A stretch of 46,591 bases of DNA, taken from positions 1 to 46,591 of the forward strand of contig MCFE01000681.1 of assembly GCA_002104905.1 (NCBI GenBank), in the 5' to 3' direction. Below are positions 1-18,106 of the stretch, piece after piece. Position 1 is the stretch's first letter; each line of letters starts with the position of its first letter. The notes beneath the pieces were generated by a model. The model did no database searches. It was not told where the DNA came from and saw only the letters and a program-made list of their open reading frames with translations. The position numbers and the translations under genes were made by a program. This DNA comes from Basidiobolus meristosporus CBS 931.73 (Eukaryota; Fungi; Basidiobolomycota).

Positions 1-1495
1 GTCTGTTTGCTAGCTCATTCAACTCAGCATATGTCAGTGATAGGCCGTCAAACACCAAAGCGGTGGCCTGCGGAGTGCGCTCGACCTGTTGCTCAAAGAG
101 ATGATGGATGCACAACTCCGATGGATAGTCCTGTTGAGTGTCATTCCACTTTCCGAGCACAAGCTCTCGCTCAGCGGGAGACAGTAGGTCTACCGACATT
201 GCAAGTCGATCTACGTCTACCGCCATTTCCCGAAGCATCGAACATAGGTACCCTACATGTCGCTCCACCGTCACGCGATCAAAGAGAGCTGTCGAGTACG
301 ACATGCTTCCCATGATTCCATCCTCCGACTCAAATAGCCCCAGCGTCAAGTCAAACTTTGCAACATCGTAGCCTGTATCGACATTTGTTATCTCAAGCCC
401 AGGCAGTTGAAAGTCTGTCGTCTCATTGTTCTGCAACACGAACATCACTTGGAACAGTGGGGAGTGGCTGAGGCTTCGTGGCGGCTGCACAATGTCAACA
501 ACCTGCTCGAACGGCAAATCCTGGTGATTCTGAGCATCAAGAGACGTCTTCCGCACTCTTTCAAGAAGCTGGCGCATTGTTGCGTTTCCTGACAGGTCAA
601 TTCGTAGTGCAAGTGTGTTGACAAAGAATCCAATCAGTGACTCGATCTCTCGGTGATTGCGGTTGGCCGAGGGTGATCCAATGATAATGTCATCCTGTCC
701 TGACATCCGCGACAGAACACAACTCCAAGCAGTGAGGATGGCCATGTACAATGTCACTCCAACCTTTTGACACAACTGTTTGAGTTCTCGTGTGAGATGT
801 AAATCCAGATGGATGGATACACTATCCCCTGCAAATGACTGCTGAGGCGGTCGTGGTCGGTCGGTCGGTAGGCTGAGGAGGACAGGAGCATTCGCCATGA
901 CTGTCTTCCAGTATGTTGTGTGAGTCTCAAGCCGATCTCCACTCAGCCACTGCTTCTGCCACGCAGCGTAGTCAGGATACTGGATAGTCAGAGGAGGTAG
1001 CGGATTGGGCTTGCCATTGCAGTATGCGCTGTACAGTGTACTCAACTCGCGATTGAAGATTGACGATGACCAGCCATCGGATATGATATGGTGTTGGGTG
1101 ACCATGAAGACATGCTCATTTTTGTCAAGCTGGACCATGAGAGCTCGAATTAAAGGTCCGTTCGCCAAGTCAAATGGATTAGATGCCTCCTTCGTTGTTA
1201 ATTGCTCTAGCCGTGATTCGGCTTCTGGCGAGTCTTGAAGATCCTCCCAGTGGATCGGCAAGCCTGAATGTGCACGCAATAGTCTCACATGAGACTGGCC
1301 ATCAATTGCAACAAACACTGAACGTAGAGCTTCGTGTCGAGCGAAAATTGTGTCTAACGCACGTAGCCAGGCATCCCGATTCAGACCCCCACGGAGACGA
1401 ATGGCGCACGGCATGTTGTATATCTCGCTTGTGCCTTCGATCTGAGCAAGAAACCACATGCGCTGTTGGGCGAAGGAAAGTGGTAGATCTCCATC
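1..1495 (-). other. NRPS module 5 (partial): LCL-type C and start of A5
   Basis: Nucleotide sequence nearly identical to 3287-4780; ends in ...LTYAELNELANR at the window edge. Confidence 0.88.
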
Positions 1496-2224
1496 GCGAG
1501 AAACTGGGCGAATAGTAGTGTGGGTTGCCATTTCTTTGTCCATGTGTCGTCTCACGGATTCGGCGAATGATGAGAGGGTTGGTGAGGTGAAAATAGATGA
1601 CAATGGTGGCGGGGCACCGAAAGAGGCTATGCGATTCATCAAGCGCACAGCCAGGAGTGAATGGCCTCCCAGTGCAAAAAAGTCATCATGTCGACTCACA
1701 TGATCGATGTTGAGTACCTCGGCCCAGATTTTGGCAACTGCTACCTCGATCTCGCCTTGTGGCTGCTCATAGGCCTCACGAGCGTAGGCGTCAGTATCCG
1801 GTGCAGGAAGAGCCTTACGGTCGAGCTTTCCATTGGAGTTCAGTGGCAGTGAATCCAATCGGACAATGGCGGCTGGAACCATGTATTCTGGTAAACATGA
1901 CGTGAGGTGTGAACGTAGAGTGTTCATCAGATTATCATCTGCCTTGGAAACCACATATCCGACTAGCCTCTTGTCAGACCCTTCACCTACTGTGACGACA
2001 ACAGCTTTATCTACAAGTGGATGGTCAACAAGTCGTGCTTCAATCTCACCAAGCTCAATTCGGAATCCTCGGATCTTGACTTGATGATCATTGCGACCAA
2101 GGATGATGATGTTTCCATCTGGAAGATACCGTGCCAGATCACCTGTCTTGTACATTCTTGCATTTTTATCTTCCGAGAATGGATCTGGAATGAACGACTT
2201 GGCCGTCAACTCTGGTCGATTGAG
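1..2224. repeat. Intragenic direct repeat R1, copy a (partner 3287-5510, offset 3286)
   Basis: Line-by-line identity with only scattered substitutions; mirrored antisense ORFs in the track (7/3293, 138/3424, 2021/5307). Confidence 0.95.
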
Positions 2225-5200
2225 GTAGCCTCTTGCAATTCCAATCCCTCCAAGGTAAAGCTCTCCTGCTGCTCCCATTGGTACTGGTTGCTGATAAGCA
2301 TCAAGAAGATATATTGTTCTGTTGGGAATAGGTCGACCAATCGGGATGTTTTCACCTTGGTAATTCTTTGGACACTTCCAAATCGTTGTGGCGACTGTGG
2401 CCTCTGTTGGTCCGTATTCGTTGATTATCTTTCCATTGGGTACCAATTTATGCACTTGAGCAGTCAGAGCTGCTGGCAGAGTCTCACCCATGATTACAAA
2501 TGTCAGTGGGGTCTTCAACGATGGCAAGCACATGCTGTCGTGGAGGAGAGTCGGAGTGATGCTGGTGTGGCTGATTGAATGCCGCTCAAAGTATTCCCAC
2601 AACTTGGGTCGATCTAGTCGGATCTCGTCCTTAACTAAGTGGAGGCATGCTCCTCCTGTCAGAGCTGAGAAGATTTCCGAAACACTATGATCGAAGCTCA
2701 ATGACGTGAATAGCAAGGCGTGACTAGTAATCGAAATGCCAAATGACTCGGGTCTTCCATGGATCAAGTTGACGACCCCTTTGTGCTCAATCATCACTCC
2801 CTTGGGCTTGCCTGTCGATCCCGAGGTATAGATAATATAAGCCAAATGTGATGAAGTCAACCCAGACACATTAGGATTTCGCACAAACTGGCTTGATGCA
2901 ATGCTTTCCAATAAATTCCTACGAACAATATCAAGAAATTAGGCAAGCCGGATTCGTATGAGTATCAACATAACTATCTGATCAAATTAGTTACCTCGGT
3001 AGTCTGTGAACTGGATCCTCAGGTCTATTAGGGTCCACTACTGTCATAAAAGCTATTGCTTCACCAAGAACCGTTTGTCCAATCAGATCTGCAATTATGA
3101 TACGCGGTGAAGCATCAACCAGAATGTCTTCGAGACGTCTGCTGGCATAAGAAGGATCGAGTGGGATGTAGGCTCCGCCTGCCTTGAGGATAGCAAGTAC
3201 TCCTGCGACCATGGCAACTGAGCGTTCGACGCAGATAGCCACAACACTCTCAGGCTGAACACCCAATGTGATGAGCTGGTGAGCCAGTCTGTTTGCTAGC
3301 TCATTCAACTCAGCATATGTCAGTGATAGGCCGTCAAACACCAAAGCGGTGGCCTGCGGAGTGCGCTCGACCTGTTGCTCAAAGAGATGATGGATGCACA
3401 ACTCCGATGGATAGTCCTGTTGAGTGTCATTCCACTTTCCGAGCACAAGCTCTCGCTCAGCGGGAGACAGCAGGTCTACCGACATTGCAAGTCGATCTAC
3501 GTCTACCGCCATTTCCCGAAGCATCGAACATAGGTACCCTACATGTCGCTCCACCGTCACGCGATCAAAGAGAGCTGTCGAGTACGACATGCTTCCCGTG
3601 ATTCCATCCTCCGACTCAAATAGCCCCAGCGTCAAGTCAAACTTTGCAACATCGTAGCCTGTATCGACATTTGTTATCTCAAGCCCAGGCAGTTGCAAGT
3701 CTGTCGTCTCATTGTTCTGCAACACGAACATCACTTGGAACAGTGGGGAGTGGCTGAGGCTTCGTGGCGGCTGCACAATGTCAACAACCTGCTCGAACGG
3801 CAAATCCTGGTGATTCTGAGCATCAAGAGACGTCTTCCGCACTCTTTCAAGAAGCTGGCGCATTGTTGCGCTTCCTGACAGGTCAATTCGTAGTGCAAGT
3901 GTGTTGACAAAGAATCCAATCAGTGACTCGATCTCTCGGTGATTGCGGTTGGCCGAGGGTGATCCAATGATAATGTCATCCTGTCCTGACATCCGCGACA
4001 GAACACAACTCCAAGCAGTGAGGATGGCCATGTACAATGTCACTCCAACCTTTTGACACAACTGTTTGAGTTCTCGTGTGAGATGTAAATCCAGATGGAT
4101 GGATACACTATCCCCTGCAAATGACTGCTGAGGCGGTCGTGGTCGGTCGGTCGGTAGGCTGAGGAGGACAGGAGCATTCGCCATGACTGTCTTCCAGTAT
4201 GTTGTGTGAGTCTCAAGCCGATCTCCACTCAGCCACTGCTTCTGCCACGCAGCGTAGTCAGGATACTGGATAGTCAGAGGAGGTAGCGGATTGGGCTTGC
4301 CATTGCAGTATGCGCTGTACAGTGTACTCAACTCGCGATTGAAGATTGACGATGACCAGCCATCGGATATGATATGGTGTTGGGTGACCATGAAGACATG
4401 CTCATTTTTGTCAAGCTGGACCATGAGAGCTCGAATTAAAGGTCCGTTCGCCAAGTCAAATGGATTAGATGCCTCCTTCGTTGTTAATTGCTCTAGCCGT
4501 GATTCGGCTTCTGGCGAGTCTTGAAGATCCTCCCAGTGGATCGGCAAGCCTGAATGTGCACGCAATAGTCTCACATGAGACTGGCCATCAACTGCAACAA
4601 ACACTGAACGTAGAGCTTCGTGTCGAGCGAAAATTGTGTCTAACGCACGTAGCCAGGCATCCCGATTCAGACCCCCACGGAGACGAATGGCGCACGGCAT
4701 GTTGTATATCTCGCTTGTGCCTTCGATCTGAGCAAGAAACCACATGCGCTGTTGGGCGAAGGAAAGTGGTAAATCTCCATCGCGAGAAACTGGGCGAATA
4801 GTAGTGTGGGTTGCCATTTCTTTGTCCATGTGTCGTCTCACGGATTCGGCGAATGATGAGAGGGTTGGTGAGGTGAAAATAGATGACAATGGTGGCGGGG
4901 CACCGAAAGAGGCTATGCGATTCATCAAGCGCACAGCCAGGAGTGAATGGCCTCCCAGTGCAAAAAAGTCATCATGTCGACTCACATGATCGATGTTGAG
5001 TACCTCGGCCCAGATTTTGGCAACTGCTACCTCGATCTCGCCTTGTGGCTGCTCATAGGCCTCACGAGCGTAGGCGTCAATATCCGGTGCAGGAAGAGCC
5101 TTACGGTCGAGCTTTCCATTGGAGTTCAGTGGCAGTGAATCCAATCGGACAATGGCGGCTGGAACCATGTATTCTGGTAAACATGACGTGAGGTGTGAAC

Positions 5201-8200
5201 GTAGAGTGTTCATCAGATTATCATCTGCCTTGGAAACCACATATCCGACTAGCCTCTTGTCAGACCCTTCACCTACTGTGACGACAACAGCTTTATCTAC
5301 AAGTGGATGGTCAACAAGTCGTGCTTCAATCTCACCAAGCTCAATTCGGAATCCTCGGATCTTGACTTGATGATCATTGCGACCAAGGATGATGATGTTT
5401 CCATCTGGAAGATACCGTGCCAGATCACCTGTCTTGTACATTCTTGCATTTTTATCTTCCGAGAATGGATCTGGAATGAACGACTTGGCCGTCAACTCTG
5501 GTCGATTGAGATATCCTCTTGCAATTCCAACCCCTCCAATATATATCTCGCCTATTGTTCCCAGAGGAACAGGAATCCTATGCAAGTCCAATATATATAT
5601 CCTTACATTGGCGATCGGGCGGCCAATTGGTACAAGGTCACCTTTGAAACTGGACTTACATTTCCATCGAGTCGCTGTAATGGTAGCTTCTGTTGGTCCG
5701 TATTCGTTGATAATCGCGGAACCCATAGGGAGCAACTGATGGAGTGCATGAAGCAAACCTGGTGGGAGAATTTCACCAACGAACGTCAGGCGCAATGGCG
5801 TTCTGAGTGGCGAAAGATTTTTGATGTCCTGAAGTACTGTTGGCGTCATTGCTGTGTGAGTGATGGAATTCTCCTGTATATAGTTCCACAGACCAGGCAT
5901 ATCTCGCCTGGCATCTTCCTGCAGTATATGGAGACTAGCACCAGAGCACAGTGTTGTGAAAATATCCAACACACTCACATCGAAACTCAGAGGTGTGAAC
6001 TGTAGGAATCGACTGGTTGTGCTGAGGCTATGTTCCTGCACACGGGACACGACGCCTTGATGCTCAATCATTACTCCTTTTGGCATTCCTGTCGAACCAG
6101 AGGTATAGATGATGTACGCAAGGTCTCGTGATGTAAGGCTAGGTACCCTTGGGTTCGAGCTGAAGAGCGATGGTATATCATTTGGATCTATTATCAAAGG
6201 ACAAGCAATTTCTATACAAAGGAATATTAAAAGTGAGTACAGATGTTCGTAGAAAAAAACATTAGTGATTACAATCCGTACCACGCAAATTACCACTCTT
6301 GTACGAGCACAGAACACCTATCTTTTGGAGCATGGAACGTCCGATGGTGTCAATTATAATGACCGTAGGTAGTGAGTCTTCCAAAATGCTCTCTAAACGG
6401 ATCTTTGGATTAGTCGGGTCGAGTGGGATGTATGTACCTCCTGCCTTCAGAATGGCTAGTATTCCCACAATTACAGCAAGAGAGCGATTCGTGCAAATCG
6501 CCACACGAATTTCAGGTTTAACACCCAGTCCAATAAGATGGTGTGCCAGTTTGTTTGCCCGCTCATTCAACTCTGCATATGTCAGTGATTGACCATTGAA
6601 CACCAAAGCCGATGCCAGAGGAGTGCGCTCAGCTTGTTGTTCAAAAATATGGTGAATACACAAGTGAGCAGGATAATCCAATTGAGTCATATTCCATGTG
6701 CGGAGCAGTAGCTCCTGTTCATGCTGTGGTAGAATGTTTAATCTCCCAGCAGTCATGTATGGCGTATCCTCAAGAGCAGAAGCCAAGCTCTCAAGTGCCT
6801 GTTGCATGTATCCGCAAACTCGTGACGGACTAAACGGCTGCACTACTTCGGCTGTAAGACTGAGTGATTGGCCATAATCATCCACTGATAGAGTGAAAGG
6901 GTAGTTTGTGCGCTCTTGACCTTCCAGGTATTCAATGCCTGTATCAACCAAAATGGCATTAGATGATGCAGTGTTGTGTCTGTAGTTCAGCATCGCACTA
7001 AACAGTGGAGTGCCTTGTGGAACACTGCTGCACCGCTGGGCGAGGACCAACGAGGCGTGTTCATGCTCGAGTAACGATGCAAGCCTTTCATGTGTCTGCA
7101 GTACAGCTTCGTAGACACTTCCAGCTAGGTCAACGCGTAGTGGCAGAGTATTGATGAACAAACCCATTGCACTGTCCGACCCTTGTCCAGAGTCCATTCT
7201 TCCGAATAGAACTGTGCCAAATACAACACGGTCCTCTCCACTTGTGCGCGATATCACCTGTCCCCACGCCACATGGCATAGAGTTGCAACACTCACTCCA
7301 AGTTGTTTGGCCTGTTGTCGCAGCCGGTCATTTAGGCCTTGTGGTAATGGCTGGCGCGATGTGATGGCATTGTCCCCGTGGCGGTGTACGTCCTTCAGTC
7401 CGAATGGCAGTGAAGGCCTATCGATGTCCATCAGCATGCTCTTAAAGAACTTCTCGTGGTAATCCTGGCGGCGATTCAGCATTGCATGCGCGATAAGGTT
7501 GCGGAAAGGCTGAGGTGCGGGCAATGTGTGGCCCAGGCCATCCATAAATGCCTTGGTCTCCATGGAAACAACCTCAAGAGTAGAATGATCACCAATCAAG
7601 TGGTGCATCAGTTCTGCGAGTATCCACCTACCGTCAGAGTCTTGAGCAACAGTGAACCTTAATAATGGTGCCAGGGTGAGATCGATGCGATGCTTTCGAG
7701 GATCAAGTATACGCTTCAGCTGATCCAAAGTAGGCCCATTCGATGGATCCAAATTAAGCTCCGTGACTGAAATTGAAGCTTGTCGCCAAACAACCTGTGC
7801 TGGCGTGGAGATATTTTCATGCACTATCGATGTACGCAAGATATCGTGCCTGTTCACCACCATTTGCACAGCTTTGATATAACTGTCCAGTAGCGGACGA
7901 GTCTCAAACGCCATTATGGAGATGAGTAGATAAGGGTCGCCTTCAGTTGCCAGAAGGTGGTGAAAAAGGATGCCTTCTTGTAGGGGAGACAAGGCATAGA
8001 TATCTTGGATGTTAGACACTCCACCAGGAACACGATGAACAACATGATCAATATCTGTCTGTGAGAGTGAGATGAGCGGCAGCACTTCCGGTGTAATTGT
8101 AGAAGTGTCTGGTGTGATGAGGTTGGTCGGCACATCAAACGAAGTGTGAGAATCCAGCGATCGTGCCAATGCACTGAGGGTAGGAGTGCTGAACAAATCG

Positions 8201-11200
8201 CGAATGGTGAGAGTCAGACCAACGCATCGCAAGCGCTCAATTAGCTGAACCGCAAGCAGGGAGTGGCCGCCCAGCGAAAAGAAATTGTCATGCCGGCTTA
8301 CTACATCAAGATGCAAGAGCTCGGACCATATCCTCGCCATAGTAGTTTCGACCTCACCATGCGGTTCCTCGTGGAAATGGTGGGCAAATGCTTCATTATC
8401 AGGTGCAGGGAGTACCTTACGATCGAGTTTGCCATTCGAGTTGAGTGGAAGAGAATCGAGTCGGACAAATGCGGCTGGAACCATGTAATCCGGTAGACAC
8501 GATCTGAGGTACGAACGCAGAGTGTGGACGAGCTGATCATCGTGCTTAGCAACAACATAGGCCACAAGTTTCCTGGCGCTTTCTTCGCCCATCGCAATCA
8601 CAGCCGCCGAGTGGACTAGCATATGCTCAGTGAGTCGGGCCTCAATCTCACCTAGCTCAATCCGGAATCCTCGAATCTTCACTTGATGGTCGTTGCGACC
8701 TAGGAAAACGACGTTGCCATCGGCGAGGTACCTCGCTTGATCGCCTGTCTTGTACATTCTCGCGTCTTGCTCACCTGAAAATGGATCCCGGAGGAACACC
8801 TGGGCAGTCAGATCGGGCCGATTCAGGTATCCCCTTGCCACTCCTGCTCCGCCGATGTACAACTCTCCAGCCGCTCCTAGGGGAACTAGTTGTCGATGCT
8901 CGTCGAGGATGTAAATACACTTGTTGGCTATGGGGCGACCAATTGGTACTACGTCTCCGCTGAAGCCCTCTGGACATCTCCATGTCAGTGAGCTCACTGT
9001 CGCTTCCGTTGGCCCATAGTCATTCACGATGCGGCCGTTCGGGATCAACGGTTGCAGGCTATGAATCAGTGATGCTGGGAATGATTCTCCCCCCAATATC
9101 AGCGTCAGAGAAGTGGAGAGCTGCGGCAGGTGCTTGGCTCCTTGGAAGATCGCGGGGGGCAAGAGTGCCTGCGTGATCGCGTTCTGCTCAAGATAGTCCC
9201 ACAGATGTCGCTGATTGTACCGGATAGCATCAGGAAGGATATGCAGACTGGCACCGGAACACAAAGTCGAGAATGTATCCATGACACACCCGTCGAAGGC
9301 GAATGAAAAGAACTGCAGTACGCGGCTTGACGTTTGGATCCCGTAGACTTCGTGTCGTGTCACGACAAGGTTGGACAATCCTCTATGCTCTACCATCACT
9401 CCCTTGGGCTTCCCGGTAGATCCGGAAGTGTAGATGATGTAGGCCAAATTGGATGAGGTCAACCCTGTCACCTGCGGGTTGGCGAGTGAATTGTCCGATT
9501 TACCACTACTGAATTGTGGTTGATATGAGCTAGCTGTTAGCTTCAATGTAAGATGATAAGATAGCTTTGTAAATCATGTTTACCTGTTTGAGCGAGGTTC
9601 TGCCGCCAACTTGTTTGGATCCACCACTGTCATGGAGGAGAGGATCCCCTCTCCTAGCGCTTGTTGTCCCAGGGTATCTGCAATCACGATGTGTGGACTA
9701 GAGTCCAGCAAGATGTCCCTTAGTCGATCACTTGCGTATGATGGATCGAGTGGGATATAGGCTCCGCCTGCCTTGAGGATAGCAAGTACTCCTGCGACCA
9801 TGGCAACTGAGCGTTCGACGCAGATAGCCACAACACTCTCAGGCTGAACACCCAATGTGATGAGCTGGTGAGCCAGTCTGTTTGCTAGCTCATTCAACTC
9901 AGCATATGTCAGTGATTGGCCGTCAAACACCTAAAGCGGTGGCCTGCGGAGTGCGCTCGACCTGTTGCTCAAAGAGATGATGGATGCACAACTCCGATGG
10001 ATAGTCCTGTTGAGTGTCATTCCACTTTCCGAGCACAAGCTCTCGCTCAGCGGGAGACAGTAGGTCTACCGACATTGCAAGTCGATCTACGTCTACCGCC
10101 ATTTCCCGAAGCATCGAACATAGGTACCCTACATGTCGCTCCACCGTCACGCGATCACAGAGAGCTGTCGAGTACGACATGCTTCCCGTGATTCCATCCT
10201 CCGACTCAAATAGCCCCAGCGTCAAGTCAAACTTTGCAACATCGTAGCCTGTATCGACATTTGTTATCTCAAGCCCAGGCAGTTGCAAGTCTGTCGTCTC
10301 ATTGTTCTGCAACACGAACATCACTTGGAACAGTGGGGAGTGGCTGAGGCTTCGTGGCGGCTGCACAATGTCAACAACCTGCTCGAACGGCAAATCCTGG
10401 TGATTCTGAGCATCAAGAGACGTCTTCCGCACTCTTTCAAGAAGCTGGCGCATTGTTGCGCTTCCTGACAGGTCAATTCGTAGTGCAAGTGTGTTGACAA
10501 AGAATCCAATCAGTGACTCGATCTCTCGGTGATTGCGGTTGGCCGAGGGTGATCCAATGATAATGTCATCCTGTCCTGACATCCGCGACAGAACACAACT
10601 CCAAGCAGTGAGTATGGCCATGTACAATGTCACTCCAACCTTTTGACACAGCTGTTTGAGTTCTCGTGTGAGATGTAAATCCAGATGGATGGATACACTA
10701 TCCCCTGCAAATGACTGCTGAGGCGGTCGTGGTCGGTCGGTCGGTAGGCTGAGGAGGACAGGAGCATTTGCCATGACTGCCTTCCAGTATGTTGTGTGAG
10801 TCTCAAGCCGATCTCCACTCAGCCACTGCTTCTGCCACGCAGCGTAGTCAGGATACTGGATAGTCAGAGGAGGTAGCGGATTGGGCTTGCCATTGCAGTA
10901 TGCGCTGTACAGTGTACTCAACTCGCGATTGAAGATTGACGATGACCAGCCATCGGATATGATATGGTGTTGGGTGACCATGAAGACATGCTCATTTTTG
11001 TCAAGCTGGACCATAAGAACGCGAATTAAGGGTCCGCGTGCTAAATCGAACGGGTTCATAGACATATTGCTACACATTTGCTTTAGCTGTGATACCCTGT
11101 CTGGAGTGCTGCTAAGATCCTTCCAGTTAATTGGCATATTTGAATCAGCTTGCAAGAGTCGCACTTGAGGTTGTCCGTTTACTGTTACAAACTCGGATCG

Positions 11201-14200
11201 TAGTACTTCGTGTCTTGAAAACATTGTATTCAGTGCGCACTGCCACGCGTCACGATTGAGGCTTCCGCGAAAATGAACAGCCGTTGGTAGGTGGTACATC
11301 TCGCTTGTACCTTCGATCTGTGCAAGGAACCAAATGCGCTTCTGGGAAAAAGAGAGTGGTAGATCCCCTACGCGAGGTATAGGCTCGATTGTTGAATATG
11401 CGGTTATCTTCTGGTCCATAAATTTACCCACTGATGCAGCAAATGATGATAGTGTGGGTGAGGCAAATATGGACGAAAGCGGCAGCTCAACACCCAGAGT
11501 GGCGACACGGTTCAACAGACGCACTACGAAAAGCGAATGACCACCGAGTGCAAAGAAGTTGTCGTTACGACTAACACGATCGACATTGAGCACCTCAGCC
11601 CAGATGTTAGCAATTGCAATTTCAGCAATGCCTTGTGGTTCCTCGTAGATTTCTCGAGCATAAGCAGCACTATCCGGGGCAGGGAGAGCCTTACGATCGA
11701 GTTTGCCATTCGAGTTGAGTGGAAGAGAATCGAGTCGGACAAATGCGGCTGGAACCATGTAATCCGGTAGACACGATCTGAGGTACGAACGCAGAGTGTG
11801 GACGAGCTGATCATCGTGCTTAGCAACAACATAGGCCACAAGTTTCCTGGCGCTTTCTTCGCCCATCGCAATCACAGCCGCCGAGTGGACTAGCATATGC
11901 TCAGTGAGTCGGGCCTCAATCTCACCTAGCTCAATCCGGAATCCTCGAATCTTCACTTGATGGTCGTTGCGACCTAGGAAAACGACGTTGCCATCGGCGA
12001 GGTACCTCGCTTGATCGCCTGTCTTGTACATTCTCGCGTCTTGCTCACCTGAAAATGGATCCCGGAGGAACACCTGGGCGGTCAGATCGGGCCGATTCAG
12101 GTATCCCCTTGCCACTCCTGCTCCGCCGATGTACAACTCTCCAGCCGCTCCTAGGGGAACTAGTTGTCGACGCTCGTCGAGGATGTAAATACACTTGTTG
12201 GCTATGGGGCGACCAATTGGTACTACGTCTCCGCTGAAGCCCTCCGGACATCTCCATGTCAGTGAGCTCACTGTCGCTTCCGTTGGCCCATAGTCATTCA
12301 CGATGCGGCCGTTCGGGATCAACGGTTGCAGGCTATGAATCAGTGATGCTGGGAATGATTCTCCCCCCAATATCAGCGTCAGAGAAGTGGAGAGCTGCGG
12401 CAGGTGTTTGGCTCCTTGGAAGATCGCGGGGGCAAGAGTGCTTGAGTGATCGCGTTCTGCTCAAGATAGTCCCACAGATGTCGCTGATTGTACCGGATAG
12501 CATCAGGAAGGATATGCAGACTGGCACCGGAACACAAAGTCGAGAATGTATCCATGACGCACCCGTCGAAGGCGAATGAAAAGAACTGCAGTACGCGGCT
12601 TGACGTGCGGATCCCGTAGACTTCGTGTCGTGTCACGACAAGGTTGGACAAGCCTCTATGCTCCACCATCACTCCCTTGGGCTTCCCGGTAGATCCGGAA
12701 GTGTAGATGATGTAGGCCAAATTGGATGAGGTCAACCCTGTCACCTGCGGGTTGGCGAGTGAATTGTCCGATTTACCACTACTGAATTGTGGTTGATATG
12801 AGCTAGCTGTTAGCTTCAATGTAAAATGATAAGATAGCTTTGTAAATCATGTTTACCTGTTTGAGCGAGGTTCTGCCGCCAACTTGTTTGGATCCACCAC
12901 TGTCATGGAGGAGAGGATCCCCTCTCCTAGCGCTTGTTGTCCCAGGGTATCTGCAATCACGATGTGTGGACTAGAGTCCAGCAAGATGTCCCTTAGTCGA
13001 TCACTTGCGTATGATGGATCGAGTGGGATATAGGCTCCGCCTGCCTTGAGGATAGCAAGTACTCCTGCGACCATGGCAACTGAGCGTTCGACGCAGATAG
13101 CCACAACACTCTCAGGCTGAACACCCAATGTGATGAGCTGGTGAGCCAGTCTGTTTGCTAGCTCATTCAACTCAGCATATGTCAGTGATTGGCCGTCAAA
13201 CACTAAAGCGGTGGCCTGCGGAGTGCGCTCAACCTGTTGCTCAAAGAGATGATGAATGCACAGCTCCGATGGATAGTCCTGTTGGGTGTCATTCCACTTT
13301 TTGAGTACAAGATCTCGTTCAGCTTGTGAGAGCAGATCCACGGACATAATCGGTTGATTTACGTTCACAGTCATTGCCTGGAGCACTGAATGCAGATATT
13401 TCACATGCTGCTTAATGGCATCAGGGTTGTACAAGTCCGAAGAATAATGCATGTCTCCCACAACCTTGTCTTCCTGTTGTTGAAGCCGCATATTTAGATC
13501 AACCAGGATCGATGTGGCAGAGTGTAAGGATTTTTTGTTATTCCATTGAAGCACAACCCGGATCAACGGTAAGGCACCGATCTTGATGATACTGTCTATT
13601 GGGATGTCATGGCGACCCATTGAAACTGTAGCGATTTTTCGCACGCGCTGTAGAAGCTGTGAAAAGTTTGGTTCGCCAGAAAGATCCAGTCGTAGGGGAA
13701 GGATGCTTGTGTCTGTCTGTTTGTCACAAATCTGGCTATCTGAGCCATTATGTTGAAACCCGATAACAATATCATCTTGGCCTGAGAGTCGAGCCAGAAC
13801 AGAACTCCAGCCAGTAATCACAACCATACTCAAGTCCATGTCGTACTCTATGGCAATCTTTTTTAGTGACTGCACCAATGGTGTGTCGAGTAAAATAGGG
13901 ATATTCGATTCATTGGTGGATTGATGAGAAACCCGAGATCGATTTGTGGGTAGGTCAAGTATAGCAGGAGCACCAACCAGGGTCTTTCTCCAAAAGTCAT
14001 ACTCGACCTGGGTGAGTGGCAGATTCAGTTTCTCATGTGCATTCGAGGATGTCGAGGGAAAAGGAGTGATATTTCTATTGTTATTGTGTAAAAACGCCAA
14101 GGTTATCAAAAAGCGGTTAAGAACAAGCGCGCGCTTCACTTCAAGACTTTCGTTTTGTTATCTCTTACCCAATCGACTGTCGTTCAATTACCGGTTCTTC

Positions 14201-14552
14201 AGAAACGTAGAGCTGTGCCGCATCGTCCGTTTTAGAGGTGTGTGTGATAACGGGTGGTTCGGCTGGATCCAACAATATGTTGTGAGATAACGATTAAATG
14301 GATATGTCAGTTTTGTTTGCTCAGGCCGACGATTGCTTGTAGTTGTTCAAGTTAGTAGTGGATCTATTCTTACCGCTAAGAGTACTTCCGCTTGCACTTA
14401 GCGCACCTTCATCCAAGGGGTGCTGTACTTTAGGTACAGGAATGCTGTAGGGCAACTTACAAGGTGAACCACGGGGTTAATCGTCAGAAGTCAGCTCAAC
14501 ACGAGTGTATCGCAGTATGTATCATACATACCTGACTATCCTGCTTGGCCAT
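1..14552 (-). CDS. Multimodular non-ribosomal peptide synthetase (3' end outside window); about 4,640 aa within the window
   Basis: Hand-built model with phase-consistent GT-AG introns: exons 14552-14532 (MAKQDSQ), 14455-14374, 14262-14169, 14074-12857, 12781-9584, 9508-6318, 6211-2995, 2918-<1 (last exon is missing from the ORF track because it is open at the window edge). Motifs: AYIIYTSGSTG, N[DE]YGPTE, YKTGD, GRNDHQVKIRGFRIELGEIE, FF[AS]LGGHSL, HHIISDGWS. Two 1-bp frameshifts in exon 5 (~12430 and ~9930). The three small 5' exons are less certain than the rest. Confidence 0.93.
1575..4780 (-). other. NRPS module 4: LCL-type C, A4, T4
   Basis: LPLSFAQQRMWF, HHIISDGWS; A4 core translated by hand from 2918 downwards: AYIIYTSGSTGKPKG, FDHSVSEIF, HTSITPTLL, FVIMGETLP, NEYGPTEATVA. 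Confidence 0.88.
3154..4424. repeat. Intragenic direct repeat R2 (partner ~9743-11014)
   Basis: Near-identical sequence at offset 6589/6590; covers the second half of C plus the A N-terminus. Confidence 0.93.
4860..8000 (-). other. NRPS module 3: dual epimerisation/condensation domain, A3, T3
   Basis: [25 protein letters not shown] plus HHLIGDHST and RTNYPFTLSVDD are the dual E/C signatures; A3 core FDVSVLDIF / NEYGPTEATIT. Confidence 0.9.
8190..11370 (-). other. NRPS module 2: LCL-type C, A2 (near-identical to A1), T2
   Basis: LPLSFSQKRIWF, HHIISDGWS, FDLTL; A2 core FAFDGCVMDTF / NDYGPTEATVS; T2 FFSLGGHSL. Confidence 0.9.
8416..10027. repeat. Intragenic direct repeat R3 (partner ~11690-13300): whole A1/A2 domain including its intron
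   Basis: Near-identical sequence at offset ~3273-3274; introns 9509-9583 and 12782-12856 are both 75 nt with one difference seen. Confidence 0.95.
11480..14030 (-). other. NRPS module 1: truncated (C-terminal half) condensation domain, A1, T1
   Basis: FWRKTLVGAPAILDLPT...LARLSGQDDIVIG aligns to the second half of the LCL C domains; no HHxxxDG; A1 motifs; T1 FFALGGHSL. Borders approximate. Confidence 0.85.
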
Positions 14553-15239
14553 TGCTTTGTTCACTTTGAGGAAGGAGTGAGTGTTCAAGATGAATGAAGC
14601 CGGGTATGAGGAGTGTTGAGCTGAGAAATAGGGGAGTGGCCAGCCCCCTTATACCTATTTGTAGTCTACTGGTTGCGTGTAAGAGGTACAGGAGTGTGTC
14701 TTTTTCCTTCTGTATGTTGAACCCCAGTTTTTTTGTTTTTGGACAATGGCCCCCACTGGGATGCATCCCTTGACAAGCTAATAATCCTGTATGCCAACGT
14801 TGTAGTCAACCCCACCCCCCCCCCTTGTTGCAATCCACCAGATACACTTAATAAGGTGTCATCCAGTTCCTTGGGCAACCATTTATTTGTGGTGGTGGAT
14901 CGGGTTGAATACCCCTCACACACACCTTGATGGGATAGGGTTGCGAATGCGTGCGGAGACAAATTTCTACGGGGCTCTGACTCCATGTTGATACCGTGCG
15001 AGTCGCCTAGTTGCCTAGTTGCAATCCCTTTTATCGTTCTGATTATTGATCTCCTATGCTCAAGTCCAATGGTATCGATAAACTCATGTATGACACTCTT
15101 CCTGCATAATTCCTCGATCGATTAAGTCATCACTTATCTGGTTACAAGGAGATGTCAATATAGGAAGGTTACCGATCGTAAAATAGTAAACTGGTAAAGT
15201 GGAGCGGTGCGTCTATACGGTGTCTCTTTCATGTTTAAG

Positions 15240-15665
15240 ACCGTTTATATATGCCATTATAAAGACTACTCTTTGAACCAATTGATTTGTAAAAATCGGA
15301 GTAATCTTGGCGGGTTGTGCTCCGAATTGACAACATCAATTCTTGCTCAATATCTGGCTTGATACTATATCAGGAGCATGTTCAAGAGCAGTTACCACTG
15401 CTGCACGTATCCACAAATTCGGTTGGGCTAAGTGACTGCACTACATCCGTTGTGAGGCCTGCTGCTGCCTATCGTACGATTTTGCCTGTGCGCCGAGATT
15501 ACAGAACGGCTGAGGTGCAGGTAATGTATGACCAGATCATACATCAATGCTTTAATTTCAACGATGGATGTATCAGAAATCATGTAGTAGCTGATCAAGT
15601 GGTAACGCAGACATGTGAGTTTGCAATGACTATTAGCGTCTTGTGCAATGATGAGCCTTAGCAAA
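15240..15665 (-). pseudogene. Decayed NRPS fragment (dual E/C domain pieces and start of an A domain)
   Basis: Across frames: LRLIIAQDANSHCKLTCLRYHLISYYMISDTSIVEIKAL / GHTLPAPQPFCNLGAQA / AVVTALEHAPD / IEQELMLSIRSTTRQDY, matching module 3 LLRFTVAQDSDGRWILAELMHHLIGDHSTLEVVSMETKAF / GHTLPAPQPFRNLIAHA / SLASALEDTP / HEQELLLRTWNMTQLDY. Frameshifts, stops and a large internal deletion. Confidence 0.8.
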
Positions 15666-16542: not shown

Positions 16543-18106
16543 TTACTGATTCCACTCAAAATGATAAGACAATTTCTGATCATGGATCATGTATCTTGCC
16601 ATATCAATAATTGATCTGTTTGCACATTCTGACACTTCATTTTGCTGCAGGGAGTGTGTTACAGTGGTCTCTTGTGTCATCCCATGAATTTTGCAGAAGT
16701 AGATGCACATTTTTGAGGCATATTCACTACCATTATCAGGGCAAATTTTCTTGATTCTTTTGCAGGTTTCTGTCTCCACCATGGCTTCAAAGTCCCTGAG
16801 CTTGTATAGTGATTCTTCTTCTCTCTCCTTGAAGTAGACCCACAAGTATCTTATATAATCATAAATAAATGTAATTAAATACTCTTCTCTGTTTAGGGAC
16901 AAACTTTGCATAGGTCTAAATGAATGCAGATGAATTAAATCTGATTTTTTCTTATTTCTGATTTGCTAAGTGCTCTTAGCAGTTGCCTGGCTTGATTTCC
17001 ATGTATGCAGACCTACAATGCTCCAAGTTAGCTGGGGATCAATTTTCCACCTGAAATCTGCTGATTTCTGATCATTTTGCTCATATAGTCAAAATTAATA
17101 TGTCCAAATCTTCTGTGACAGAGCACTGATGTTTCCTCATTGAAGTTACTTATATTCCAGATATGATGGTATATAAGCTAACTAGTATAGACTCTGAGCT
17201 CTGATACCCAGGGCAATATGGGTGCCATTTAGATCAGTGGTCCTGCATTCATTATTGTCAAAACTGGCACTGATTCCTTCTGATATAGTCTTGCTTACAG
17301 AAAATAGGATCTTGGCTCTTTTGGTACATGGAGTACTTCACTGAAGGTAAGTAAATGGCTTCCTTTATTATTTTTGAGACTTATTTGGGTGGTGCCCTGT
17401 CCAACTACATTAAGTGTTCTATGAATCCTTGTGAAAACCTTCTTAATTATAGTTTACCTAAGGAGGTTGAAAGTTTGTTTTGATGGGTATAGTGTTACTA
17501 TTCTGCAAAGTCCATTTTCCGCATCCATAATTCCATGTTTGCTACCATACTGCATGTATAGATGTATAGTCTATCTTTAGTGGTTGTGGTTTTCCTTGTT
17601 TGACTTTTTCAGCTGATGATCTTTCTTTTTGAAGCACTGGTCTGATGTATATCCTTCCCTTTTCCAAAAGCTGCAAGAAAGGTTGCTGTTGCCTTAAAAG
17701 GGTCTTGAGAGCCTTCTTTGGTGGTTATCATTTCCTGTGAAAGCATTGATGTTTTCTTTCTTCATGGAACTAGATTCACTTAATTATTCATGTAGCATCT
17801 TTGTGATAAAATATTTTTGCTTAAAGTAAATTACCTCAGCAGCCAAACAGGAGTGGTAGGTAACTTCTAATGGCTTCCAGGCACTATTTGCTATTTTTAC
17901 CTTTGAACATGGGCATTGAATTAGCATTTTGTCTTTAACACATATGTATACAAAGTTAAAGGCACTTGGTTCTTACTTGTGGTAACTCAAGGCTTCTTCT
18001 CCTACATCTTTAGGAGGGCCATTTTCTCACATGACAACATCCCAAAGGCCTTGTTTCTATAATAGCCACTTCACCTTCACCTTCACCTTCCAGACTTGGT
18101 GGTTAA
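16543..18106 (-). mobile_element. Degenerate Ty1/Copia LTR retrotransposon fragment (gag, zinc knuckle, GAG-pre-integrase, integrase core)
   Basis: NHQVWKVKVKVKWLL*KQGLWDVV (gag N-terminus, ~18030-18105); CSFWKREGYTSDQC (decayed CCHC knuckle, 17634-17675); LCHRRFGHINF...VCIHG (GAG-pre-integrase, ~17010-17125); YLITFIYDYIRYLWVYF...DNGSEY...QQNEVSECANRSIIDMAR (rve). Many stops; no RT found. Confidence 0.88.

Follow-up and report, generated by a model that had tools for sequence, protein, structure and literature searches.

Concerted evolution of modules has been described for nonribosomal peptide synthetases (NRPSs) and polyketide synthases, including those of daptomycin/CDA/A54145, syringopeptin, and mycolactone (Medema 2014, PMC4256081). 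In bacterial adenylation (A) domains, the stretch from motif A2 to motif A5/A6 is a common recombinant unit (Booth 2022, PMC9205934; Baunach 2021, PMC8097286), and these authors cite engineering of the A core (Crüsemann 2013; Kries 2015). For the fungus Basidiobolus meristosporus CBS 931.73, which was sequenced by PacBio, eight NRPS gene models with 32 A domains were reported in a surfactin-like clade (Tabima 2020, PMC7466969). Here we analyzed an NRPS gene fragment located at positions 1-14157 of contig MCFE01000681.1 from this genome (assembly GCA_002104905.1). The window, i.e., the whole stretch of DNA that was analyzed, is the entire contig of 46,591 nt. The gene is a mosaic in which large parts of several modules are near-identical, with sharp borders, and in which different segments give conflicting phylogenies. 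Judged from the sequences, intragenic gene conversion (or an equivalent unequal exchange) probably overwrote the module scaffolds recently, the A-domain cores being old and retained and no substrate pocket being imported.

The Basidiobolus gene adds a fungal case to a type of event that is already known (Medema 2014; Baunach 2021; Booth 2022). As in the synthetases described by Medema 2014, paralogs within the synthetase cluster together over their positional orthologs, and diverged parts escape homogenization, in line with the model in Figure 4 of that study. Those cases are bacterial and concern whole domains, whereas the gene described here is fungal, contains introns, and has borders that lie inside domains and are resolved to the nucleotide. 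As in bacterial A-core exchange, the divergent unit extends from motif A2 to motif A5/A6, and the linker between the condensation (C) and A domains and the interface between A-sub and the thiolation (T) domain are kept. In the bacterial exchanges, however, the core is incoming and is nearer to another module than to its ortholog, whereas in the Basidiobolus gene the core appears to be resident and its surroundings incoming. One of the homogenized blocks consists of one A domain alone and resembles the whole A-domain substitution reported for pyoverdine-type NRPSs (Calcott 2020, PMC7486941).

Among fungal synthetases, the gene resembles MpcA, MpbA, and MalA of Mortierella alpina (10.1101/2020.08.21.262279; PMC9365243) in its truncated starter C domain (Cs), its mixture of LCL and dual E/C-type C domains, its introns, and its bacterial ancestry. 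The truncated Cs is similar to the Cs of MpcA and MpbA. The gene differs from the Mortierella NRPSs in sharing just 55-76% amino acid identity with any Mortierellaceae match. The words duplication, recombination, and gene conversion are absent from the two Mortierella NRPS papers. The surfactin-like clade of Tabima 2020 comes from the same genome and represents the same clade of bacterial-like A domains as the NRPS analyzed here; inter-module recombination and gene conversion are not mentioned in that study.

Domain architecture and near-identical blocks

In an open reading frame (ORF) survey, the long open frames in positions 1-14157 are all on the minus strand, and a plus-strand reading was ruled out because every long open frame and every domain lies on the minus strand. 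The Pfam families Condensation, AMP-binding, AMP-binding_C, and PP-binding were matched on each stop-free piece, and AMP-binding and AMP-binding_C are present in every module. The domain order in gene direction is Cs-A1-T1-C2-A2-T2-C3(dual E/C)-A3-T3-C4-A4-T4-C5-A5, the last domain being represented by its first ~60 codons. The A domains carry the core motifs LAYIIYTSGSTG, YGPTE, GELYIGG..ARGYLNRP, and NGKLDRK, and match the A domains of LgrA and GrsA in PDB with E values of 1e-161 to 1e-77. The phosphopantetheine site GGHS was found in T1, T2, and T3; T4 is part of a block sharing 99.7% identity with that of T3. C2 and C4 contain LSFAQQRMWFL and HHIISDGWS, as does C5 by identity, and C3 contains an N-terminal HHLLATEGD plus HHLIGDH. 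From these motifs, we take C2, C4, and C5 to be of the LCL type and C3 to be of the dual E/C type. The Cs is truncated and has no HHxxxDG motif. An ATG start was sought in the Cs open frame and none was found, leaving no evident start codon there.

The gene is thus a modular C-A-T synthetase, bacterial-type and intron-bearing, in an early-diverging fungus. The best protein matches of one exon are from Mortierellaceae (Benniella, Mortierella spp., and Modicella; 56-76% identity), followed by Burkholderia/Mycetohabitans (55-60%), and the gene accordingly belongs with the bacterial-like NRPSs known from early-diverging fungi. In an exact protein look-up of six window ORFs, just one unnamed 152-aa protein was matched. 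As the window comprises a complete contig, the contig end cuts the gene short, with its 3' part lying elsewhere and no TE or other release domain visible; the fragment would correspond to roughly the 5' two thirds of the gene. It runs off the contig end within a 2.2-kb repeat, indicating that the assembly broke in a repeat family. The gene and its parts are listed below in gene direction; gene Y is an NRPS gene on a soil-metagenome contig that is described in the next section.

1..14157, minus strand: NRPS gene fragment, defined by stop-free pieces and Pfam matches; runs off the contig end at position 1
13301..14157, minus strand: truncated starter-like C domain (Cs), covering Pfam positions 190-453 only; unique sequence
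11690..13300, minus strand: complete A1 domain with intron and pocket, bounded by the C-A junction (LVLKKWNDT) and motif A10 (NGKLDRK); 98.8% copy of A2
11015..11689, minus strand: T1 with the first quarter of C2 (N-terminal side); unique sequence, sharing 67% identity with its counterpart in modules 3/4
9743..11014, minus strand: C2 from ~15 residues before HHIISDG through its end, and the A2 N-terminus to PLDPSYA; one of three 99.1-99.3% copies
8416..10027, minus strand: whole A2 domain; partner of the A1 block
6406..8415, minus strand: T2, dual E/C-type C3, and A3 N-terminus; not homogenized, 40-80% vs. other modules
5511..6405, minus strand: A3 core and intron; unique; ortholog of the first core of soil gene Y
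3287..5510, minus strand: A3 from motif A6, followed by T3, C4, and the beginning of the A4 N-terminus; 99.69% identical to 1-2224
3154..4424, minus strand: C-terminal three quarters of C4 and the A4 N-terminus; member of the three-copy block
2225..3153, minus strand: A4 core (after motif A2 to motif A6) with its intron, occurring once in the window; orthologous to the second core of soil gene Y
1..2224, minus strand: A4 from motif A6, T4, C5, and A5 N-terminus; copy of 3287-5510, terminating at the contig end

Repeats were measured by self-BLAST, a repeat finder, and global alignments. The original prediction, which was made by reading the sequence, had described three overlapping near-perfect repeats, and all three were recovered. 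Positions 1-2224 and 3287-5510 differ by 7 substitutions and 0 indels (99.69% identity), and the next 929 nt (2225-3153 vs. 5511-6439) share 55.8% identity. Positions 3154-4424 and 9743-11014 differ by 8 substitutions and one 1-nt indel (99.29%), next to an adjoining stretch of 67% identity. A third copy of this block (1-1138 vs. 9876-11014) differs by 9 substitutions and one 1-nt indel (99.12%). Positions 8416-10027 and 11690-13300 differ by 16 substitutions and two 1-nt indels (98.82%), and the adjoining stretch shares 50% identity. At the borders, the number of differences per 100 nt climbs from 0-2 to 23-49 over a few bases, far above chance.

At the protein level, A4 is composed as had been proposed. 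Its N-terminus up to PLDPSYA shares 96.9-100% identity with those of A1, A2, and A5 and 74% with that of A3, and from GIARGYLNRP onward, through T and C, it is identical to A3. Positions 2225-3153, which are unique in the window, hold the A4 intron and every pocket position but the invariant Lys. The borders of the A4 core exactly bracket the stretch from motif A2 (PLDPSYA) to motif A6 (GIARGYLNRP), the same unit as that of Booth 2022 (PMC9205934). In modules 3 and 4, the computed alignment borders enclose the A core (motifs A2 to A6), in agreement with the subdomain-swap breakpoints (motif A2 to A5/A6) known from bacteria, so the breakpoint check suggested with the original prediction came out in its favor. 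All borders in the gene fall in conserved motifs, namely PLDPSYA (A2), GIARGYLNRP (A6), NGKLDRK (A10), the C-A junction LVLGKWNDT, and a site ~15 residues before HHIISDG.

The reading of this locus as a multi-modular NRPS in a fungal genome, and as a mosaic of very recent recombination with breakpoints at the nucleotide level, is borne out by these data. The further claim that only the pocket cassette had been exchanged describes at most the module 3/4 pair, in which the core is the divergent unit. It fails for the remaining blocks: the homogenized A1/A2 block spans the whole A domain with its pocket and intron, and the C2/C4/C5 block begins inside the C domain. A1 and A2 have the same pocket code, and the codes of A3 and A4 differ from that of A1/A2 and from each other, all codes being approximate since they were taken from motif anchors.

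Cores and flanks compared with related genes

Related loci are present on a Benniella genome contig (L001) and on soil-metagenome contigs (L002/L003, L006, and L007). L002 carries two tandem NRPS genes (1-4511 and 8113-14909). The second of these, gene Y, opens with a dual E/C-type C domain homologous to C3 of the window, and the last A domain of the first carries an A4-type core (Soil_Xlast). L002 8113-14782 is colinear with window 1456-8115, with 76.8% identity over 6.7 kb, through C3, A3, T3, C4, A4, and T4. The A3 and A4 cores share 76-83% identity with their positional counterparts in gene Y, in the same order; in this comparison, the A3 and A4 cores of the window share 56-63% identity with each other. 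The window flanks share 99-100% identity with each other and 63-89% with either L002 flank. Inter-module identity within the relatives is 67-93%, indicating that the near-identity in the window (0.3-1.2% difference, vs. ~23% to L002) is recent and lineage-specific. The two A-sub/T flanks of L002 are themselves 84-93% alike vs. ~77% to their window orthologs, which suggests older gene conversion in the L002 lineage too.

Maximum-likelihood trees were built per segment (CORE, ASUB, and T-C-A_N) from the window, soil, and Benniella units. In the CORE tree, the window A3 groups with Soil_Ya (support 100/100), and the window A4 groups with Soil_Yb/Xlast (100/99). In the ASUB tree, the window A3 and A4 group with each other (100/100). 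In the T-C-A_N tree, the three window LCL units cluster together (98/100), apart from the soil and Benniella units. The C3 domain within 6406-8415 clusters with C domains from soil (Y0 and Xprev). Approximately unbiased (AU) tests rejected a forced A3 + A4 grouping for the core alignment (p = 1.8e-46), and rejected forced ortholog pairs for the A-sub alignment (p = 2.5e-7 and 2.7e-11). The cores follow position across genomes and the flanks follow genome, with paralogs closer than orthologs and conflicting trees, as is characteristic of concerted evolution. Since the cores go with their positional orthologs and the flanks group within the genome, the flanks appear to have been overwritten and the cores not to have been imported.

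Strong purifying selection on the scaffold domains, acting with no recombination, might be considered because the identical parts are the structurally constrained C, A-sub, and T. This explanation is practically untenable. The 99-100% nucleotide identity includes synonymous sites and the A1/A2 intron, which refutes it; moreover, the positional orthologs are only 67-89% identical, and the phylogenies conflict.

The original prediction explained the divergent core differently, namely by pocket swapping; in this model, a module was very recently duplicated and one copy then took up a foreign pocket cassette (an A-core swap) and thereby a new specificity. Such a swap would account for a unit running from A2 to A6, which is exactly the bacterial NRPS recombinant unit (PMC9205934, PMC8097286), yet both cores are found in the same order in gene Y, whose flanks are diverged. 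The flanks in the window differ at merely 7 of 2224 nt, as a recent duplication would have it, but the flanks group by genome, and in both the trees and the AU tests each core goes with its positional ortholog. A swapped core is expected to be nearer to a donor than to its positional ortholog, with orthologous flanks, and the pattern found is the opposite. The A4-type core at the end of the other soil gene (Soil_Xlast) points to a core type that moves or duplicates among genes; in the window, however, the C2/C4/C5 tract involves no pocket, the A1/A2 tract runs through one, and the reads show no second copy of either core (see below). Pocket swapping is therefore unlikely as the origin of the module 3/4 pattern.

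Under recent intragenic conversion of the scaffolds, the tandem modules of 3.27-3.29 kb would recombine with each other, and the scaffold parts of several modules would have been overwritten by sister-module copies in at least three overlapping tracts. In modules 3/4 to 4/5, the first tract would start at motif A6, pass through T and C, and take in the N-terminus of the following A domain. The second, represented in C2, C4, and C5, would begin shortly ahead of the HHxxxDG motif of the C domain and extend as far as the next motif A2. The third (A1/A2) would comprise a complete A domain, bounded by the C-A junction and motif A10. The tract ends would lie in the most conserved motifs, where even diverged paralogs may be alike enough to permit strand invasion and resolution. 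At ~55% identity to each other, the A3 and A4 cores may be too diverged to convert, or may be shielded by selection on the product. We infer gene conversion as the mechanism from the mosaic and the conflicting trees, and the same applies to the reason why the cores were spared and to any effect on the peptide. As a way to find the donor of the A6-to-A2 block, comparison with the two L002 flanks was tried and dropped, showing no clear difference.

Two other relatives bear on the older history of the gene. L001 9368-15389 contains a Benniella Cs-A-T-C-A-T gene colinear with Cs-A1-T1-C2-A2N of the window. The second A domain of this Benniella gene has an A3-type core, as though the unit from the A2 core to A3N were absent there. 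The Benniella NRPS gene is flanked by 6.5-kb direct repeats (L001 1-6478 and 18085-24483) with 90% identity. L006 is colinear with the window across A1..A3N (70.8% identity) and has an A1-type core at the A2 position. A recent fusion of a two-module gene with a gene like Y of L002 was considered on the basis of the colinear Benniella gene and of gene Y beginning at the C3 homolog. It was dropped because L006 is colinear over A2-T2-C3-A3, which makes the joining of module 2 to C3 and module 3 an old feature.

Read-derived contigs and copy number

Read-derived (Logan) contigs from runs X1 and X2, which represent one sample, possibly from the source strain, were compared with the window over positions 1801-7800. 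These contigs cover 2195-3149/3198 with 0 differences, 4395-5510, and 5481-6622. They break or branch one k-mer inside the predicted borders (2195, 3149, 4395, 5481, and 5510), with 0-3 differences and no gaps, indicating that the junctions exist in the reads, outside the assembly. Both cores join block 4395-5510 in the k-mer graph. The depth of the A3 and A4 cores in the reads is 56-64, as for single-copy sequence, and no second copy of either core that might represent a donor was seen in the reads by depth.

Part of the module family appears to be far more abundant in the reads. Positions 6770-7800 are represented in runs X1-X3 by C3-type variant contigs with a depth of 735 and ~95% identity to parts of C3, and the variants overall have 9-13 times the single-copy depth. 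The window copies differ from the abundant variant by ~4.5% and a 15-nt indel. Logan contigs discard minority variants by design, and these data suggest that about ten more near-identical module copies exist elsewhere in the genome, the window's minority version being lost in contig building. Contig depth was also tried as a measure of copy number and was set aside as inconsistent.

An assembly or polishing artifact, in which a PacBio mis-join or over-homogenization inflated the module number or the 99-100% identity, was weighed against these read data. The window is a whole contig ending within a repeat, which makes the terminal copy (1-2224) the most suspect, but the copies carry private substitutions (7, 8, and 9 between pairs), of which positions 312, 410, and 585 are private to the contig-terminal copy. 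The strain was sequenced by PacBio (Tabima 2020, PMC7466969) and two 1-nt indels occur in the repeats, yet the read contigs end or branch where the assembly predicts. The window version of 3238-4138 is not among the read contigs; such missing minority versions are to be expected, since Logan contigs drop minority variants, and the distance between the window copies and the abundant variant shows that they were not polished towards it. The depth of the two- and three-copy blocks, only about 1.1-1.7 times that of single-copy sequence, would also suit an artifact. On balance, this explanation is distinctly unlikely.

Several observations weigh against recent conversion of the scaffolds. The groups used in the AU tests were chosen after the trees were seen. 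The relatives come from unknown or distant taxa, and ortholog here denotes a positional homolog only. The blocks are about equally close to the soil 'a' and 'b' flanks, so that no donor or direction is picked out. The first repeat adjoins the contig end. The two-copy block (4395-5510) has a depth of 71/67 vs. 56-64 for the cores, and the three-copy block ~100, lower than the copy numbers would lead one to expect. Positions 3238-4138 are covered only by ~95% variant contigs with a 15-nt deletion and a depth of 560-725 (~10x); the window's own version has no match in the read contigs, so this part of the three-copy block is not independently confirmed. The G+C content by block over 1-14157 is 0.50-0.525 in multi-copy blocks vs. 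0.445-0.49 in unique blocks, a difference that GC-biased gene conversion could produce, although domain type and intron content are confounding factors.

Introns, surroundings, and meaning of the mosaic

Each of A1-A4 contains one predicted GT-AG intron of 75-82 nt at a homologous site between motifs A2 and A3, the splice phase of which was checked with 20 codons on either side. These introns, two frame breaks in the gene, and a domain remnant upstream of it are as follows.

12782..12856, minus strand: predicted A1 intron, 75 nt, GT-AG
9509..9583, minus strand: predicted A2 intron, 75 nt, near-identical to the A1 intron
6212..6293, minus strand: predicted A3 intron, 82 nt, GT-AG
2919..2994, minus strand: predicted A4 intron, 76 nt, GT-AG
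12427..12433, minus strand: reading-frame break within the A1 core, where the run of C is 5 long vs. 6 in the 99% identical A2 copy
9928..9932, minus strand: reading-frame break within the N-terminus of A2, which has one base more than A1N, A4N, and A5N
15465..15664, minus strand: weak N-terminal remnant of a C3-like condensation domain (tblastn E = 1e-6), ~1.3 kb upstream of Cs

Motifs A2 and A3 are 283 nt apart and separated by a frame change in window A3 (6087-6426), in L001 (13707-14046), and in L002 (9802-10141). The spacing and frame change common to Benniella, the soil contig, and window A3 indicate that the intron predates the divergence of these genes. The nucleotide identity between the Basidiobolus gene and the Mortierellaceae and soil genes, ~71-77%, looks high for vertical descent between phyla.

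Two of the six frame changes, at ~12430 and ~9930, were also considered as introns, and this reading was rejected because there is no room for an intron and both are 1-nt indels relative to sister copies. The A2 frame-break site reads TTTAGGTG vs. TTTAGTG in A1N and TTTGGTG in A4N/A5N, and falls exactly at the overlap of two homogenized blocks. The two 1-nt frame breaks may be real lesions or PacBio consensus errors. With these breaks, a gene cut short at the contig end, no obvious start codon, and a search for RNA runs that found none, the locus is at most a candidate source of a new peptide and a candidate engineering template, the two further roles seen for it in the original prediction. 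A biosynthetic cluster context was sought around the NRPS gene and none was found; the neighbors are a decayed retroelement, a HAD hydrolase, an alpha-amylase, a peptidase M49, and a Myb protein. Positions 16543-16911, in an AT-rich stretch adjoining the NRPS gene, contain a decayed retroelement integrase fragment (rve, under the Pfam cut-off).

For annotation, these results are a warning that Basidiobolus NRPS genes lie in repeats that break contigs and attract consensus errors. They also correct the direction of an inference, as finding a divergent pocket between identical flanks is not in itself proof of a pocket swap. The gene displays, nucleotide by nucleotide, where NRPS modules get cut and pasted, presumably without being destroyed, and three of the five border sites coincide with exchange units that NRPS engineers have used or proposed. 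The concerted evolution of assembly lines, described in bacteria, is extended here to an intron-bearing fungal gene of bacterial ancestry. More tentatively, if the further copies of the C/A N-terminus block and of the C3-type block exist elsewhere in the genome, the window might show just the edge of a genome-wide system, in which an NRPS module family spread over several genes is kept as one interchangeable chassis by ongoing conversion, with only the pocket cores persisting as separate lineages, a possibility that we regard as doubtful at present. If it were true, the family would be a natural eukaryotic plug-and-play NRPS platform, and the intron site shared with Mortierellaceae would suggest that this platform spread between fungal phyla after the intron was gained.

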